Part shown: piece after piece, positions 37,196 through 49,800 of the stretch
Layout of the letters: each line of letters starts with the position of its first letter
How positions within the stretch are numbered: the stretch's first letter is position 1
IMG/VR virus record: IMGVR_UViG_3300028735_000003
Location: 186,001 to 250,000 of that record
Strand: one strand, 5' to 3'
Length of the DNA stretch: 64,000 nucleotides
Notes under the pieces: generated by a model
What the model was told of the DNA's origin: nothing
The model's input: only the letters and a program-made list of their open reading frames with translations
The model's database searches: none
Translations under genes and position numbers: made by a program

Positions 37196-38578
37196 TTAAT
37201 GTATTCCAATACTATTAAGGTCTTCTTCTAGTTGCCTTGCCATCTCATCCACTTCCTCTGTTCCTCTCCTGGTTTTATGAGTGGAGGGTTGAGCCTTTGG
37301 TTTCGGAGACTCCGGTGAAAAATATGGAGTTGGTGTTTCTGGTCTCGAAGGCTGTGGTGAAAAATATGAAGTTGGTGCTTCTGGTTCCGAAGACTCCGGT
37401 GAAAAATATGGAGTTGATGTTTCTGGTTTCGAAGGCTGCGGTAAAATTTCACTTCTTTTTAAAACTGCCTCTTGCATTCGTTGCCGCGCATTTTCTGCTA
37501 AACTTTGGGATTTAGATAATATATTCAAAATCTCTTGAATTGATTTCTTATATGGAGTGAGGGCTCTCATCACGTCATCAAAATCATCAGCAACTAAACC
37601 ACCATCGCCATGCAAAAATCGAACTCTATCTATCAAATCGTTAATTACTCCCTTTTCCTCTGTTTGTTCAGACTTATATGTTTTTGATCTAAAATTATCA
37701 ATAACCTGTTCAATAGCTGGTAATATTTCTTCTGCTTCCTTAGCAAACATTCGATATGCATTAACTATTGTATCTCCAGGTTGAGATTTGGCTAATTCAA
37801 CTAATTCGCTAGCTGTTCTTGGTTTTTGTAATTCGTTAATAATTGGAAGTACCCGTTGATACGTATTAAAAAAATTCATTAATAATTGTCTGAAATTACG
37901 CATTTGATTCAAAAAATTTTGACTATATGTATTACCAATAAAAAAGCCAGCATTATCATCTAATAAATCATCAATTTCCGCAATTAATTTTTGATGATTC
38001 TTAGTAAAGCCTTCATCAGTAAATGGAAGATGTTGTTGTAAATATACAGCGCCCAAGATCACAGCTACACCAATTAAAATGGGAGTTGCTAATACTGCTG
38101 GTGCTATAGCTTTTTTTGTTATTGTTGTGGCTTGCTCTAAGCATACATCTGCTAAAACACGCAATTTTTCTTTATGTTTATTATCTAAATCATTACCAAT
38201 TCGAACTAAAGATAACAATAGTTGTTGCTCTGCATATTTTCTTTGAGTCAAATGACCATTAGGCGTCTTTTGTACTATATGTCTCAAAATATTTTGTCTC
38301 TCATTTATGTTTTCTACAAGACCATTTAATTTATCATATGAAGGAGAAATAACTACTGGATTTTTGTGTGCATCTTCTATAATATTTCTCTTATACTTCA
38401 TTCCGCTAGGTGCATCTGGTTTTACACCATATAATGCTTCAATAGCAGAAATATCAAGAGAATCCATTCTAGGATTAATCTCCAATTTCTTTTTAATTTC
38501 CTTCGGTGTAGACTTGGAAATTAAGCCATTTTCTTGCGCTATTTTAGCAAATTCATCAAAAATTTCGCTATGTCTCAT
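37196..38578 (-). CDS. Putative head-internal protein with one hydrophobic segment and C-terminal PYFSP repeats
   Basis: KxA motifs (AKIA, RKYA, TKKA); hydrophobic stretch right after KKA. Confidence 0.6.
   Translation of the reverse strand: MRHSEIFDEFAKIAQENGLISKSTPKEIKKKLEINPRMDSLDISAIEALYGVKPDAPSGMKYKRNIIEDAHKNPVVISPSYDKLNGLVENINERQNILRHIVQKTPNGHLTQRKYAEQQLLLSLVRIGNDLDNKHKEKLRVLADVCLEQATTITKKAIAPAVLATPILIGVAVILGAVYLQQHLPFTDEGFTKNHQKLIAEIDDLLDDNAGFFIGNTYSQNFLNQMRNFRQLLMNFFNTYQRVLPIINELQKPRTASELVELAKSQPGDTIVNAYRMFAKEAEEILPAIEQVIDNFRSKTYKSEQTEEKGVINDLIDRVRFLHGDGGLVADDFDDVMRALTPYKKSIQEILNILSKSQSLAENARQRMQEAVLKRSEILPQPSKPETSTPYFSPESSEPEAPTSYFSPQPSRPETPTPYFSPESPKPKAQPSTHKTRRGTEEVDEMARQLEEDLNSIGIH
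37305..37440. repeat. Coding tandem repeat (three ~39-nt units, P-E-T/A-x-T-x-Y-F-S-P)
   Basis: GGTGAAAAATATG occurs three times at ~39-nt spacing. Confidence 0.8.
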
Positions 38579-38627
38579 TATTTAGCTCACATTGGTAATT
38601 TATTTATATGCTTTCATATGCCATTGA

Positions 38628-46826: not shown

Positions 46827-46850
46827 AGTATCCTCTATTAGTTAGTTATC

Positions 46851-49800
46851 TTAGAACAATCGCTTAGGAGTCTTAGATAACATTGCTGACAATTGAGCAA
46901 CTAAATTATCATCATTTGAACTTACTTGAGCGTATTCTCCAGCTCCAATCATTCCAACTTGTGGAATATGTCCTGAAGCTTCTTTGCGAAGTAATGGCGC
47001 GTGTTTTGCAACAACCCTCTTAAGAGAGTCGAAACTTTCATCATTAAACTTCATAATTTCATCTACTTGAGCAGAAATGGCACTTCTATCATTATGACAC
47101 AATCCGCGGTCTACCATATCATAAGCTAATTCATAAGCTCTTGCTAACTTAATACGATACTTATTTAATTCAGATTCCATCTCAGCCTTGACATGTTCCT
47201 TTACAAGTTCACTCGCAAAATCAGATCCCCCATCAACTTGTCCCCAATACTTTCTATAATAAGCGACTGCGTCTTTATCTAAACCCTCTGCAATTAAGGC
47301 GTCTAGATCAGCAGGATCCAACTTGCCTTCGCTAATTAACCTGTGAATAGCTTCTGCTTCCTTACGAACCTTTGGAGGTGCAGTTGCAAGATCCATCATT
47401 GCATCATGAGTTTCTTCAATATTTTCAATAACTCCAAGGTCACCAGATGGCTTTACATCGAACCTTGTTGTTACTTTGTTCTTTGGATGTGCTTCATGTA
47501 GATGCGGGCTTGTCTTCATTGCATCAGCAGCTAACTTAGCACGCATAGCAGCACGCCCTTCTATTGTATCAAATGATGCCACCTTAACATCTTTTAATTC
47601 TGTTCCTGGCTTCAAACTAGCTAACTCTTGAGCGGTCATTGTTGCATCGTTGTCATCTACAGATAATGAGTCTTCAAATTCGTCATCATCTAATTCTTCA
47701 TATTCTGATTCTTTAGATTCTGACTCTTTACTTAGCTCATCTAGAAGTGAAGAGAAATACTCACTGTCGCCATCTGGTTTGAAACCATCTGTCTCGGAAT
47801 AGTCTGTCTCGGAACGATCTATCATATCACCGACAGTATCTAATTCGTCATCTGTTTCACTTATAAGATCATCTAAATCATCTCCAGATTTTATGTGTTT
47901 ATAGCTGTCTTCTGAAGTCATTGCATCTCCTTCGACAGCCAATGATTCAAGCTCTGCCTCAATTTCAGCACGCTTTACAATGGCCTTGGTTCCACGGGCA
48001 TACTTAACGAAAGCGGTCATCAATTTAAACCCATCAGCGATTGCTGTCTTTGCTTCGGCTAGAGCGTCTTCTATAATAGAACCAACAAATTCCTTATTAG
48101 AATTGGTAACTGCGCCTTTATCATACATACCAACAATCATCATTAATTCTTGTTGATGATCTTGAAGTTCTGCAATAGATTCCTTCATTGCATTTGTTAA
48201 TGCTCCGTTAAGTTCTTTTCTTAAGATATTTAAAGTCCCTGTTTCGGAAGCCATTGCGCCAATTTCTGGTACACTTTCTTGTTCTACCTCGCCACCTTCT
48301 CCCATTTCTTTTTGTTCACCAGTCAACGCTCTAACAGCTTCAACCAAATCCGACCCCAAATCTCTAATCTTCTCTGCTAATTCAAGAGCAGTTTCTTTTG
48401 GATCACCAGACTTTCCTGTATCTTCTGCACCTTCTAGTGCGGCTTCTGGAGGAGAAACTTCTGGAAGAGTGGCTGCTTCTGGAGCAGGAGCAGTAGCAGG
48501 AGCAGAGGTAGGGGCAGGAGCAGGAGCAGGAGCAGGAGCAGGAGCGGGGGCAGATTGCGCACTCTTAACAATTGAGCGAACTTTATCTACTCCTAATGTC
48601 TTAATTTTTTCAATCAACTTAGATCCGAATTCCTTGGTTGCGATACTATCATATAACATGCTAGCACGATTTCCAGACAATTCATTAACTGATGCTGTTA
48701 GTAATAACTTGTTTCCTAAGAAAACCTCCCAGCCACTATTCCCTAGATTTGGTGTTCCATCGTCATTAGCAGCTTTCACAAAACGTGCTCTAAATGACGC
48801 CCTTTGAAGCATATCCTTACGCTTTTCTTCATCTGCTATATCGGCAGAAGCTGGACTTGGGTGCATACCATCAACTGGTCCAACATTTGGAAATGGTTTT
48901 TGTCCAACCATTTGTTTATCGCCACTATCACGAAGTTGTTCATTCAATTTATCTGGTGGATACTTTGTTTTACCTGGAGTTGGTTCTTGTGGATTCTTAT
49001 CTCCAGCATGAAAATATGCCTGTTTCTTTTGCTCTAGTGCGTTCTTTGCCATATTGACAATGGCGTTACGACGCATAGCACGCTCTTCAGCTTCAGCGCG
49101 GGCAAGCATCTTTTTGCGCTCTAAATCGCCAGGATATAGTTGTTCTGGAGACCCCATATCATCTACATCCATATGCTTATCCCCATTAGTTCTCAACCTT
49201 TCATTGATTGGGTCTTTTGGATATCTTGGTTGACCAGGGCTAGGCTCATTTTCATTACCAGCACCTTGAAAATAACCTCGTTTATTAATATTTGATCCTA
49301 ACATATTTTCCTCTTGTATACTTGTGGAAGTGTTTGCTAACTTATCCAAGCTTTGTTTCATTTGATTTAATTTAGTCTCAATAGATGCCGTAACTACTCT
49401 AAGCTCGGAAACTAGGTCTGCTTCCACATTAGTAGAAGCATATCGGACGGCAGGTGGAGCTAATCCAAAATCCGTATTGGGTATTGCTGTCTCGTCCATA
49501 GCGACAGTTCTAGACGATTGATTAAATGCGCAATCATTAGTATCTTTTTCTGAATTATTTAAAGATTCAGTAATTTTAGCTAATTGTTCCATAGCATTTT
49601 GAACATCTTTTCGTAGTTCTTCTAAACTAGTAGCTTGAATATCTATGGATGAATTATCCCCATCATTAGTGCTAACTCTAAATGATGCCGTAAAAATATC
49701 AGCAAATTTATTTAATTCTTTCTCTTTTTTCTCTACATATGAATTAAGAGTATTTGCCGCAGCAATAATATGTTTAATACGTGCTTTTGGATCTGCGCCA

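Follow-up and report, generated by a model that had tools for sequence, protein, structure and literature searches.

A conserved module common to a protease-scaffold fusion and two candidate passenger proteins in the head gene block of an uncultivated huge phage

Apart from one conserved element, the capsid targeting sequence (CTS), the internal proteins of phage T4 are diverse (PMC3012670), and the CTS is stated to direct these proteins into the scaffolding core (PMC3012670; Mullaney & Black 1996 as cited in PMC10052503). Similar targeting roles have been proposed for the N-terminal propeptides of giant-phage head proteins; in phage SPN3US, many internal or ejection proteins lose their N-terminal parts to an essential, Glu-specific prohead protease (PMC10052503). 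The present analysis concerns a 64,000-nucleotide stretch of viral DNA (termed the window; bases 186001-250000 of the single 353,765-bp virus contig IMGVR_UViG_3300028735_000003), in which three proteins contain a common conserved module: P0001, a prohead protease fused to a long scaffold-like protein, and the proteins P0002 and P0003. Their genes form part of the head-morphogenesis block, with the portal/protease-scaffold genes on one side and the gene of the major capsid protein on the other. As the likeliest of the roles considered, the module would serve to build its three proteins into the young capsid. By analogy, the sharing of a long module by a scaffold and two candidate passengers may be regarded as a variation on the known kind of capsid targeting, found here in a lineage without annotation or cultured member.

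In several other systems, the capsid-binding end of a scaffold is common to a second protein: It is located at the extreme C-terminus in the C/Nu3 proteins of phage lambda, in the herpesvirus protease/scaffold, and in the scaffold of staphylococcal phage 80alpha and the CpmB protein of SaPI1. In lambda and the herpesviruses, the common region arises from nested in-frame genes. The logic of these scaffold-related pairs, i.e. a second protein that bears the short region of the scaffold and enters or acts on the same procapsid site, would be similar to that of the locus described here; unlike in lambda and the herpesviruses, however, the module is encoded by three separate genes at distances of 3-5 kb, and the scaffold copy is internal whereas the passenger copies are N-terminal. 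The resemblance to the T4 CTS consists in the presence of a conserved N-terminal element on otherwise divergent proteins; P0002 combines a conserved leader with a fast-evolving body. In contrast to the CTS, a stretch of about 10 residues for which no copy in the T4 scaffold is reported, the element described here has a length of ~45-50 residues inside a leader of ~110-150 residues, and one copy is positioned within the protease-scaffold fusion. In sequence it is unrelated to the T4 element, and one copy per family and genome is present instead of the several internal proteins of T4. With the propeptides of the phiKZ-type phage SPN3US the module has in common the giant-phage head and an invariant Glu in a stretch predicted to be flexible; however, the SPN3US propeptides are characterized by a three-residue motif with no long homologous module reported, whereas Val, Ile or Leu, not Ala, is positioned two residues before the Glu in the present proteins, and their protease is of the phage G/HK97-like type and fused to the scaffold.

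Bacillus phage G is the nearest cultured relative of the 353,765-bp phage. Both have the order portal, protease, further genes, capsid (in phage G gp14 portal, gp19 protease, gp20/gp21, gp26 decoration protein and gp27 capsid protein); over the second piece of the capsid gene, the identity to gp27 amounts to 51.5%, and an endolysin-like gene is located inside the head block of both phages, in phage G between the scaffold-region genes and the capsid gene. Unlike P0001, the phage G protease is a separate protein of 300 amino acids (aa), and the scaffold is a different one. In phage G, searches revealed no copy of the module and no counterpart of P0002, of P0003 or of the C-terminal unit of the scaffold; as the module and both passenger families are missing there, the three occur together or not at all. 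At the DNA level, none of the cultured phages is close: Megablast and tblastn searches against them gave no match to the 8.6-kb DNA from P0002 to the scaffold gene, and the proteins P0002 and P0003 as well as the C-terminus of the scaffold were likewise without relatives there.

Copies, homology and distribution of the module

An initial annotation of the window had placed the module at three sites, and all three segments were confirmed at these positions, each on the minus strand (see Table 1). The location at the scaffold C-terminus had to be revised: The copy in P0001 is positioned 170-215 residues before the end of the ~1217-1230-aa fusion and is followed by a helical domain of 140 residues and a tail. 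Likewise, P0002 and P0003 had been regarded as otherwise different proteins; they are, however, homologous across their whole first ~110-135 residues, and the module is N-terminal in both.

The "EAHP" motif of the initial annotation persisted in part. Its A-H pair is kept in the relatives of P0002 (43/43, and 106/106 in a wider set) and of P0003 (121/121; the family consensus at the A70-H-K of P0003 reads AHP), but among 121 scaffold homologues only 66 have the His, while Asp is found instead in 51 (~42%), within a variant stretch. Near-universal are the Ala of AHP (119/121 scaffold, 43/43 P0002 and 121/121 P0003 homologues) and the Glu of a ΦΦE-(T/D/N)-(I/L) turn (Φ, hydrophobic residue), which is conserved in 121/121 scaffold homologues, 43/43 and, in the wider set, 105/106 P0002 relatives, and 120/121 P0003 relatives. 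All 106 members of the wider P0002 family have A95, H96, G99, P130 and K133. The K-x-A motif, supposed to lie close to each copy, was located 12-25 residues upstream of the module in the scaffold and P0002 relatives (K in 106/106 and A in 103/106 P0002 relatives) and was missing from the P0003 family. No other stretch of P0002 or P0003 is as well conserved as the module (64% and 70% mean pairwise identity, respectively), on which strong purifying selection acts throughout a large clade; since the three copies resemble each other in DNA sequence only where codons specify conserved residues, the constraint acts on the protein.

Pairwise BLASTP comparison related P0002 to P0003 across their N-termini (E-value (E) of 7e-4), while the scaffold gave no significant match to either protein. 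Among the 2686 six-frame open reading frames (ORFs) of the 354-kb genome, a hidden Markov model (HMM) built from any two copies detected the third as its best non-training match (E 0.003-0.024), and the HMM of all three copies revealed no fourth one. On the level of families, hhalign aligned P0002 (residues 11-138) with P0003 (residues 4-114) over 105-108 columns at a probability of 95-96% (E 1.5e-9 to 3.8e-8). The scaffold family matched the P0002 family exactly at the module (41-43 columns, E ~5e-5), with a score of 38.2 compared with 14.5 +/- 2.7 (maximum 23.9) in 60 column shuffles; the merged P0002+P0003 profile matched the scaffold with E 2.4e-5 and a score of 33.4 compared with 10.4 +/- 2.2 (maximum 16.3) in 80 shuffles. 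The scaffold profile matches were thus ~9-10 standard deviations (SD) over the column-shuffled controls, and the alignment, whose failure in profile comparison had been named beforehand as evidence against a common module, proved significant except for the direct comparison of the scaffold with P0003. While P0002 and P0003 have a domain of ~110 residues in common, the scaffold contains just its ~45-residue core; at low stringency, the similarity may extend ~40 residues past the Glu to L-V-(S/R)-x-G-(K/N)-L-D, although this extension was marginal (scaffold versus P0003, E 0.023, 92 columns). P0002 and P0003 also have a second motif in common at their extreme N-terminus (a helix with E-x-G-L/M at its end), but a search with it recovered only the reciprocal protein (E ~0.04-0.05) and no other ORF.

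The profile of the three-family alignment (A4) was run on the own genome and on five related IMG/VR records of 349-448 kb, a search that the initial annotation had proposed. Exactly three copies were detected in each of the six genomes, one per gene family: They are located in a scaffold ORF of 1160-1583 aa, an ORF of ~370-520 aa and an ORF of ~410 aa, in the same order and 3-5 kb apart. Four of the related records (G002-G005; loci L026, L028, L036 and L055; 349-447 kb) are classed as "provirus" by IMG/VR. Against 1.84 billion representative proteins, the same profile yielded 1224 matches at E <= 1e-3 and 499 at E <= 1e-10. The best 150 of the 1224 matches all belonged to one of the three families or were fragments of their members. 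Metagenomic relatives, on contigs of up to 480 kb, numbered 45 for P0002 and 446 for P0003; 442 metagenomic homologues were found for the C-terminal part of P0001, and an IMG/VR scan with the scaffold alignment gave 140 loci. The short scaffold-type hits P0312, P0326 and P0381 start at an internal Met and were taken as truncated calls, not as separate genes. Several scaffold homologues from other contigs contain inteins, and single homologues are filed under metagenome-assembled genomes named Candidatus Berkiella and Saccharimonadales.

Architecture of the module-bearing proteins

The homologues of P0001 begin at the ATG at position 50504 (MFIK...), 13 codons into the ORF that opens with TTG at 50543; the gene therefore probably starts at 50504 and encodes ~1217 aa. 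Residues ~47-282 match the head maturation protease family phrog_18299 (6e-14), and residues 47-262 are 33.8% identical to gp19 of phage G (6e-22); the match to NF045541 (4e-7) is far under the curated cut-off, and neither a Pfam match nor a PDB sequence match was obtained for the protease domain. Based on the curated family matches, the N-terminal domain is probably a prohead protease of the HK97/phage G type. Its invariant His (D-H-K; V-D-H-V-R-G) and Ser (V-S-M-G) positions, conserved in 30 homologues, are the putative catalytic residues. Residues ~205-224 (~49890-49970, minus strand) form a conserved zinc ribbon/zinc finger-like Cys-x4-Cys ... Cys-x-His stretch; its Cys positions are invariant in the 30 homologues, and a similar Cys-rich stretch is present in gp19 of phage G.

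The ~950 residues that follow the protease domain are conserved in the homologues. They contain a two-copy internal repeat (residues ~422-590; ~48770-49280, minus strand; ~85 residues each, both conserved in homologues) with the pattern G-Y-F-Q ... E-P-x-P-G-x-x-(K/R)-Y-P-x-D ... D-K-x-M ... E-R-K-K-M-L-A-R-A; the helical domain behind the module is followed by a conserved basic C-terminal tip. A scaffolding function of P0001 is suggested by its position beside the protease and upstream of the capsid gene as well as by its length, helical character and acidic linker; the capsid protein fits the ~318-position profile of phrog_2522 without long N-terminal extension, i.e. it contains no delta domain of its own.

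None of the three proteins matches a Pfam family, and only the N-terminal domain of P0001 belongs to a PHROG with annotated function (head maturation protease). For the scaffold C-terminus and the module, nothing was found in Pfam, PHROGs and NCBIfam, and these databases gave low-complexity matches only for P0002 and P0003; for P0003, the protein atlas likewise yielded nothing usable. P0002 and P0003 are homologous in their leaders, while their bodies are mutually unrelated. In the P0002 body (~250 residues) few anchor residues are kept (P, G, W, terminal F...W), and no Pfam domain was detected in the 106 family members; a (T/S)-P-Q-P repeat tract spans residues ~272-303, and one relative with 97% identity falls short of P0002 by 12 residues in total. 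The hydrophobic segment of P0003 (residues 157-175) varies in sequence among homologues yet stays hydrophobic. Three copies of an E-T-x-T-P-Y-F-S-P-E/Q repeat, absent from most homologues, are located at the C-terminal end of P0003.

AlphaFold2 was applied, with the family alignments, to the P0002 leader and to the C-terminal unit of the scaffold; both models were of low overall confidence (predicted local distance difference test (pLDDT) values of 65 and 61, respectively). In both contexts the module reached a pLDDT of 38-55 (P0002 45-55; scaffold below 50), next to confidently predicted helices (P0002 residues 50-86, pLDDT ~80; scaffold ~1057-1180, pLDDT 70-85); its modeled shape consists of the AHP loop and a short helix that starts right after the invariant Glu. 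When modeled alone, the module is thus predicted to be disordered, as expected of a partner-dependent docking element. A Foldseek comparison of the scaffold C-terminal unit model with the PDB gave no match.

Possible roles of the module

The explanation that we tentatively favor regards the module as the core of a capsid-incorporation leader that docks all three proteins on a common partner site. In this view, P0002 and P0003 are paralogues in an N-terminal leader of ~110-150 residues, to which P0002 adds a fast-evolving helical body and P0003 a body with a likely membrane-spanning segment, as would befit an ejection protein; the fusion, in its C-terminal unit tethered by the acidic linker, bears only the ~45-50-residue leader core. 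This core (the A-H-P loop, the ΦΦE turn and a short amphipathic helix with K/A-x-P at its end) would be flexible and fold on contact with one conserved site of the assembling procapsid: The two passengers would use the docking contact of the scaffold and be built in together with it, and the scaffold-fused protease would then process the capsid contents. The homology, the conservation, the three copies per genome, the location in the head gene block and the predicted disorder are results of the analysis; binding itself, the site bound (on the inner face of the capsid, the scaffold body or the portal) and cleavage of any kind are inferred. The co-assembly role claimed by the initial annotation is partly supported in its general form, i.e. 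as an assembly element common to a scaffold and two passengers, by the position in the head block, the conservation, the single copy per family, the leader/body build of P0002 and the predicted disorder; its particulars, recruitment into the scaffold core and cleavage at K-x-A, are putative.

Several points weigh against a docking leader of this type. The docking partner is putative, and the standing of P0002 and P0003 as virion proteins is deduced from gene position only. The direct profile match between the scaffold and P0003 families was not significant (E 0.02-0.18), so that the three-way relation holds via P0002 only. Furthermore, ~42% of the scaffold homologues swap the His of AHP, whereas P0002/P0003 homologues of the same lineage keep it (e.g. 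P0221 and P0021, on 26,768-bp contigs with adjacent NCBI locus tags); in consequence, half of the motif appears dispensable in the scaffold copy. This copy is internal, whereas known scaffolds bind the coat protein at their extreme C-terminus, and the scaffold is devoid of the other ~90 leader residues, which might be the real targeting element.

As the main rival, though in our estimation a rather unlikely one, the module might constitute a substrate cassette of the P0001 protease, which would cut all three proteins, most plausibly directly behind the invariant Glu of V-I-E-N, I-I-E-T and L-V-E-N, and would thereby split the scaffold body from the C-terminal unit and the passengers from their N-terminal leaders. 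Indeed, this Glu is essentially the sole side chain invariant in all three families and is preceded by a hydrophobic pair, the segment is predicted to be flexible and would therefore be accessible, and the three genes encode the likely contents of the protease's own procapsid. The T4 protease gp21 cuts after L/I-x-E. Related head proteases also cut after Glu, gp245 of SPN3US after A-X-E (PMC10052503). However, a cleavage site needs 3-5 residues compared with the conserved unit of ~50 residues, and ~35 conserved residues follow the Glu in P0002; the conserved leader thus does not stop at the proposed cut. In addition, ΦΦE-type motifs were not enriched over shuffles in the three proteins, the N-terminal look-alike A-I-L-E of the capsid protein is not invariant, the T/D/N behind the Glu is equally explained as a helix N-cap, and the cut-site preference of the P0001 protease is only putative. 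A complex prediction of the protease domain with P0002 residues 84-146 (score 0.01) gave no answer and speaks neither for nor against binding. The literal model of the initial annotation, in which the module is an oligomerization element and P0002 and P0003 co-polymerize like with like into the scaffold core, is considered improbable. It draws on the same data as the docking leader; in addition, the module is restricted to lineages with the long fused scaffold and absent from phage G with its other scaffold, and the helix behind the Glu is amphipathic, as can be read from the sequence. But a Pro/Gly/His-rich loop with a 14-residue helix is atypical for self-association, the divergence of the AHP half between scaffold and passengers in ~42% of the scaffold homologues is a poor fit to like-for-like pairing, and structural modeling gave no support.

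Even less credence is given to common descent as the only cause, i.e. to one ancestral helical domain whose conserved stretch represents a structural turn without common partner or step. The marginal hint of a ~90-residue domain (the similarity ~40 residues past the Glu) would be in line with it; the module is, however, modeled as disordered and not as part of a fold, and it is the best-conserved part in two of the three proteins while the rest diverged beyond recognition from the scaffold, which points to a specific shared constraint. Chance or composition, for which the insignificant pairwise BLASTP results of the scaffold against either protein could be cited, is extremely improbable; it was rejected because of the profile scores 9-10 SD over shuffles, the leave-one-out recovery and the three copies in 6/6 genomes.

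In an extended and doubtful form of the docking explanation, the ~150-residue leader, with the module as its core, would be the portable packaging tag of a very large, uncultivated clade of 350-480-kb phages. By mimicry of a scaffold docking contact, this tag would bring two proteins into the capsid, a fast-evolving one that might act as an effector directed at the host or against its defences, and an ejection protein that inserts into membranes, with the invariant Glu as the point of release by the scaffold-fused protease. If true, it would represent a scaffold-mimicry form of capsid targeting that could be used for protein encapsidation. The way in which proteins are loaded into huge-phage heads is known in just two lines, T4 and phiKZ/SPN3US; for a third one, which is very large, related to phage G and without any cultured member, the module is a sequence-defined candidate for the loading signal. 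As points for experimental tests it offers an invariant Ala, an invariant Glu and the leader of 150 residues, and it provides annotators with a signature that ties three previously unnamed gene families into one head-assembly set.

Genes of the surrounding head block

The window has a GC content of ~34%, and nearly every gene is located on the minus strand. The features referred to above and the further genes of the block are compiled in Table 1.

Table 1. Module copies, module-bearing proteins and other head block features (coordinates are window positions; P0001 residues are counted in the 1230-aa ORF).
Feature	Position	Strand	Remarks
Module copy A, P0001 residues 1013-1060	47364-47507	-	A1018-H-P ... 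V-I-E1040-N, short helix, A-P-P-K
Module copy B, P0002 residues 88-135	43559-43702	-	A95-H-P-N-G ... I-I-E113-T, helix, K-K-P-T-G-K
Module copy C, P0003 residues 62-112	38243-38395	-	A70-H-K ... L-V-E89-N, helix, K-T-P-N-G
P0001, prohead protease fused to long scaffold-like protein	46851-50543	-	1230-aa ORF; protease family matches
Protease domain of P0001, residues 14-285	49689-50504	-	with Cys/His-rich insertion; alignment A5, 82% mean column identity
Acidic linker, P0001 residues 871-985	47589-47933	-	sets off C-terminal unit; 42% mean pairwise identity versus 61-77% in flanks
Helical domain after module, P0001 residues 1061-1200	46944-47363	-	74% mean pairwise identity, pLDDT 70-85
P0002	42752-43963	-	403 aa; module-bearing protein, no annotated family
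P0002 N-terminal leader, residues 1-150	43514-43963	-	51-64% identity versus 15% for residues 151-403
P0003	37196-38578	-	460 aa; module-bearing protein, no annotated family
P0003 N-terminal domain, residues 1-135	38174-38578	-	homologous to P0002 leader (hhalign, BLASTP)
Hydrophobic segment, P0003 residues 157-175	38054-38110	-	likely transmembrane helix; Kyte-Doolittle 19-residue mean 2.46
Large terminase	60453-63971	-	1172 aa; intein splicing and LAGLIDADG domains between two terminase halves
Portal	57321-60377	-	1018 aa; long middle insertion; weak LAGLIDADG-like match
Endolysin-like domain	53945-55105	-	phrog_3513, 3e-13; inside head gene block
Major capsid protein gene, two pieces	35582-35869 + 33795-34514 (span 33795-35869)	-	phrog_2522
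LAGLIDADG endonuclease ORF	34604-35434	-	inside capsid gene insertion; PF03161, 1.8e-36
Tail sheath	8311-11115		beyond capsid gene in block

The two pieces of the capsid gene were searched separately, without a joined spliced model: Positions 12-87 of the major head protein profile phrog_2522 match one piece and positions 93-317 the other. The gene is interrupted after "...VVDPL" by an insertion of ~1.07 kb, for which Rfam gave no intron model (group I). Among relatives, the capsid gene is uninterrupted at locus L036, and an insertion at a similar place is present at L066. Directly downstream of the capsid gene, a 714-aa ORF (31543-33687, minus strand) matches the endonuclease family phrog_4645 (4e-47) and shows further LAGLIDADG-like and methyltransferase-like matches; it is another mobile-element-like gene in the head block.

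Two adjoining genes of the minus strand encode small acidic proteins of 262 aa (45280-46068) and 139 aa (44864-45283) that have an N-terminal domain of ~60 residues in common (BLASTP E 6e-10) and are unlike thereafter; besides P0002 and P0003, they are another leader-sharing pair of this head block. The gene beside this pair (46083-46826) encodes a 247-aa protein extremely rich in Ser and Asp. A 609-aa ORF (39740-41569, minus strand) overlaps its upstream gene (41418-42752) by 150 bases, so that its true start is probably located later; residues ~411-445 of this ORF contain a short collagen-like G-A-T/G-E-T repeat that matches tail-fibre PHROGs.

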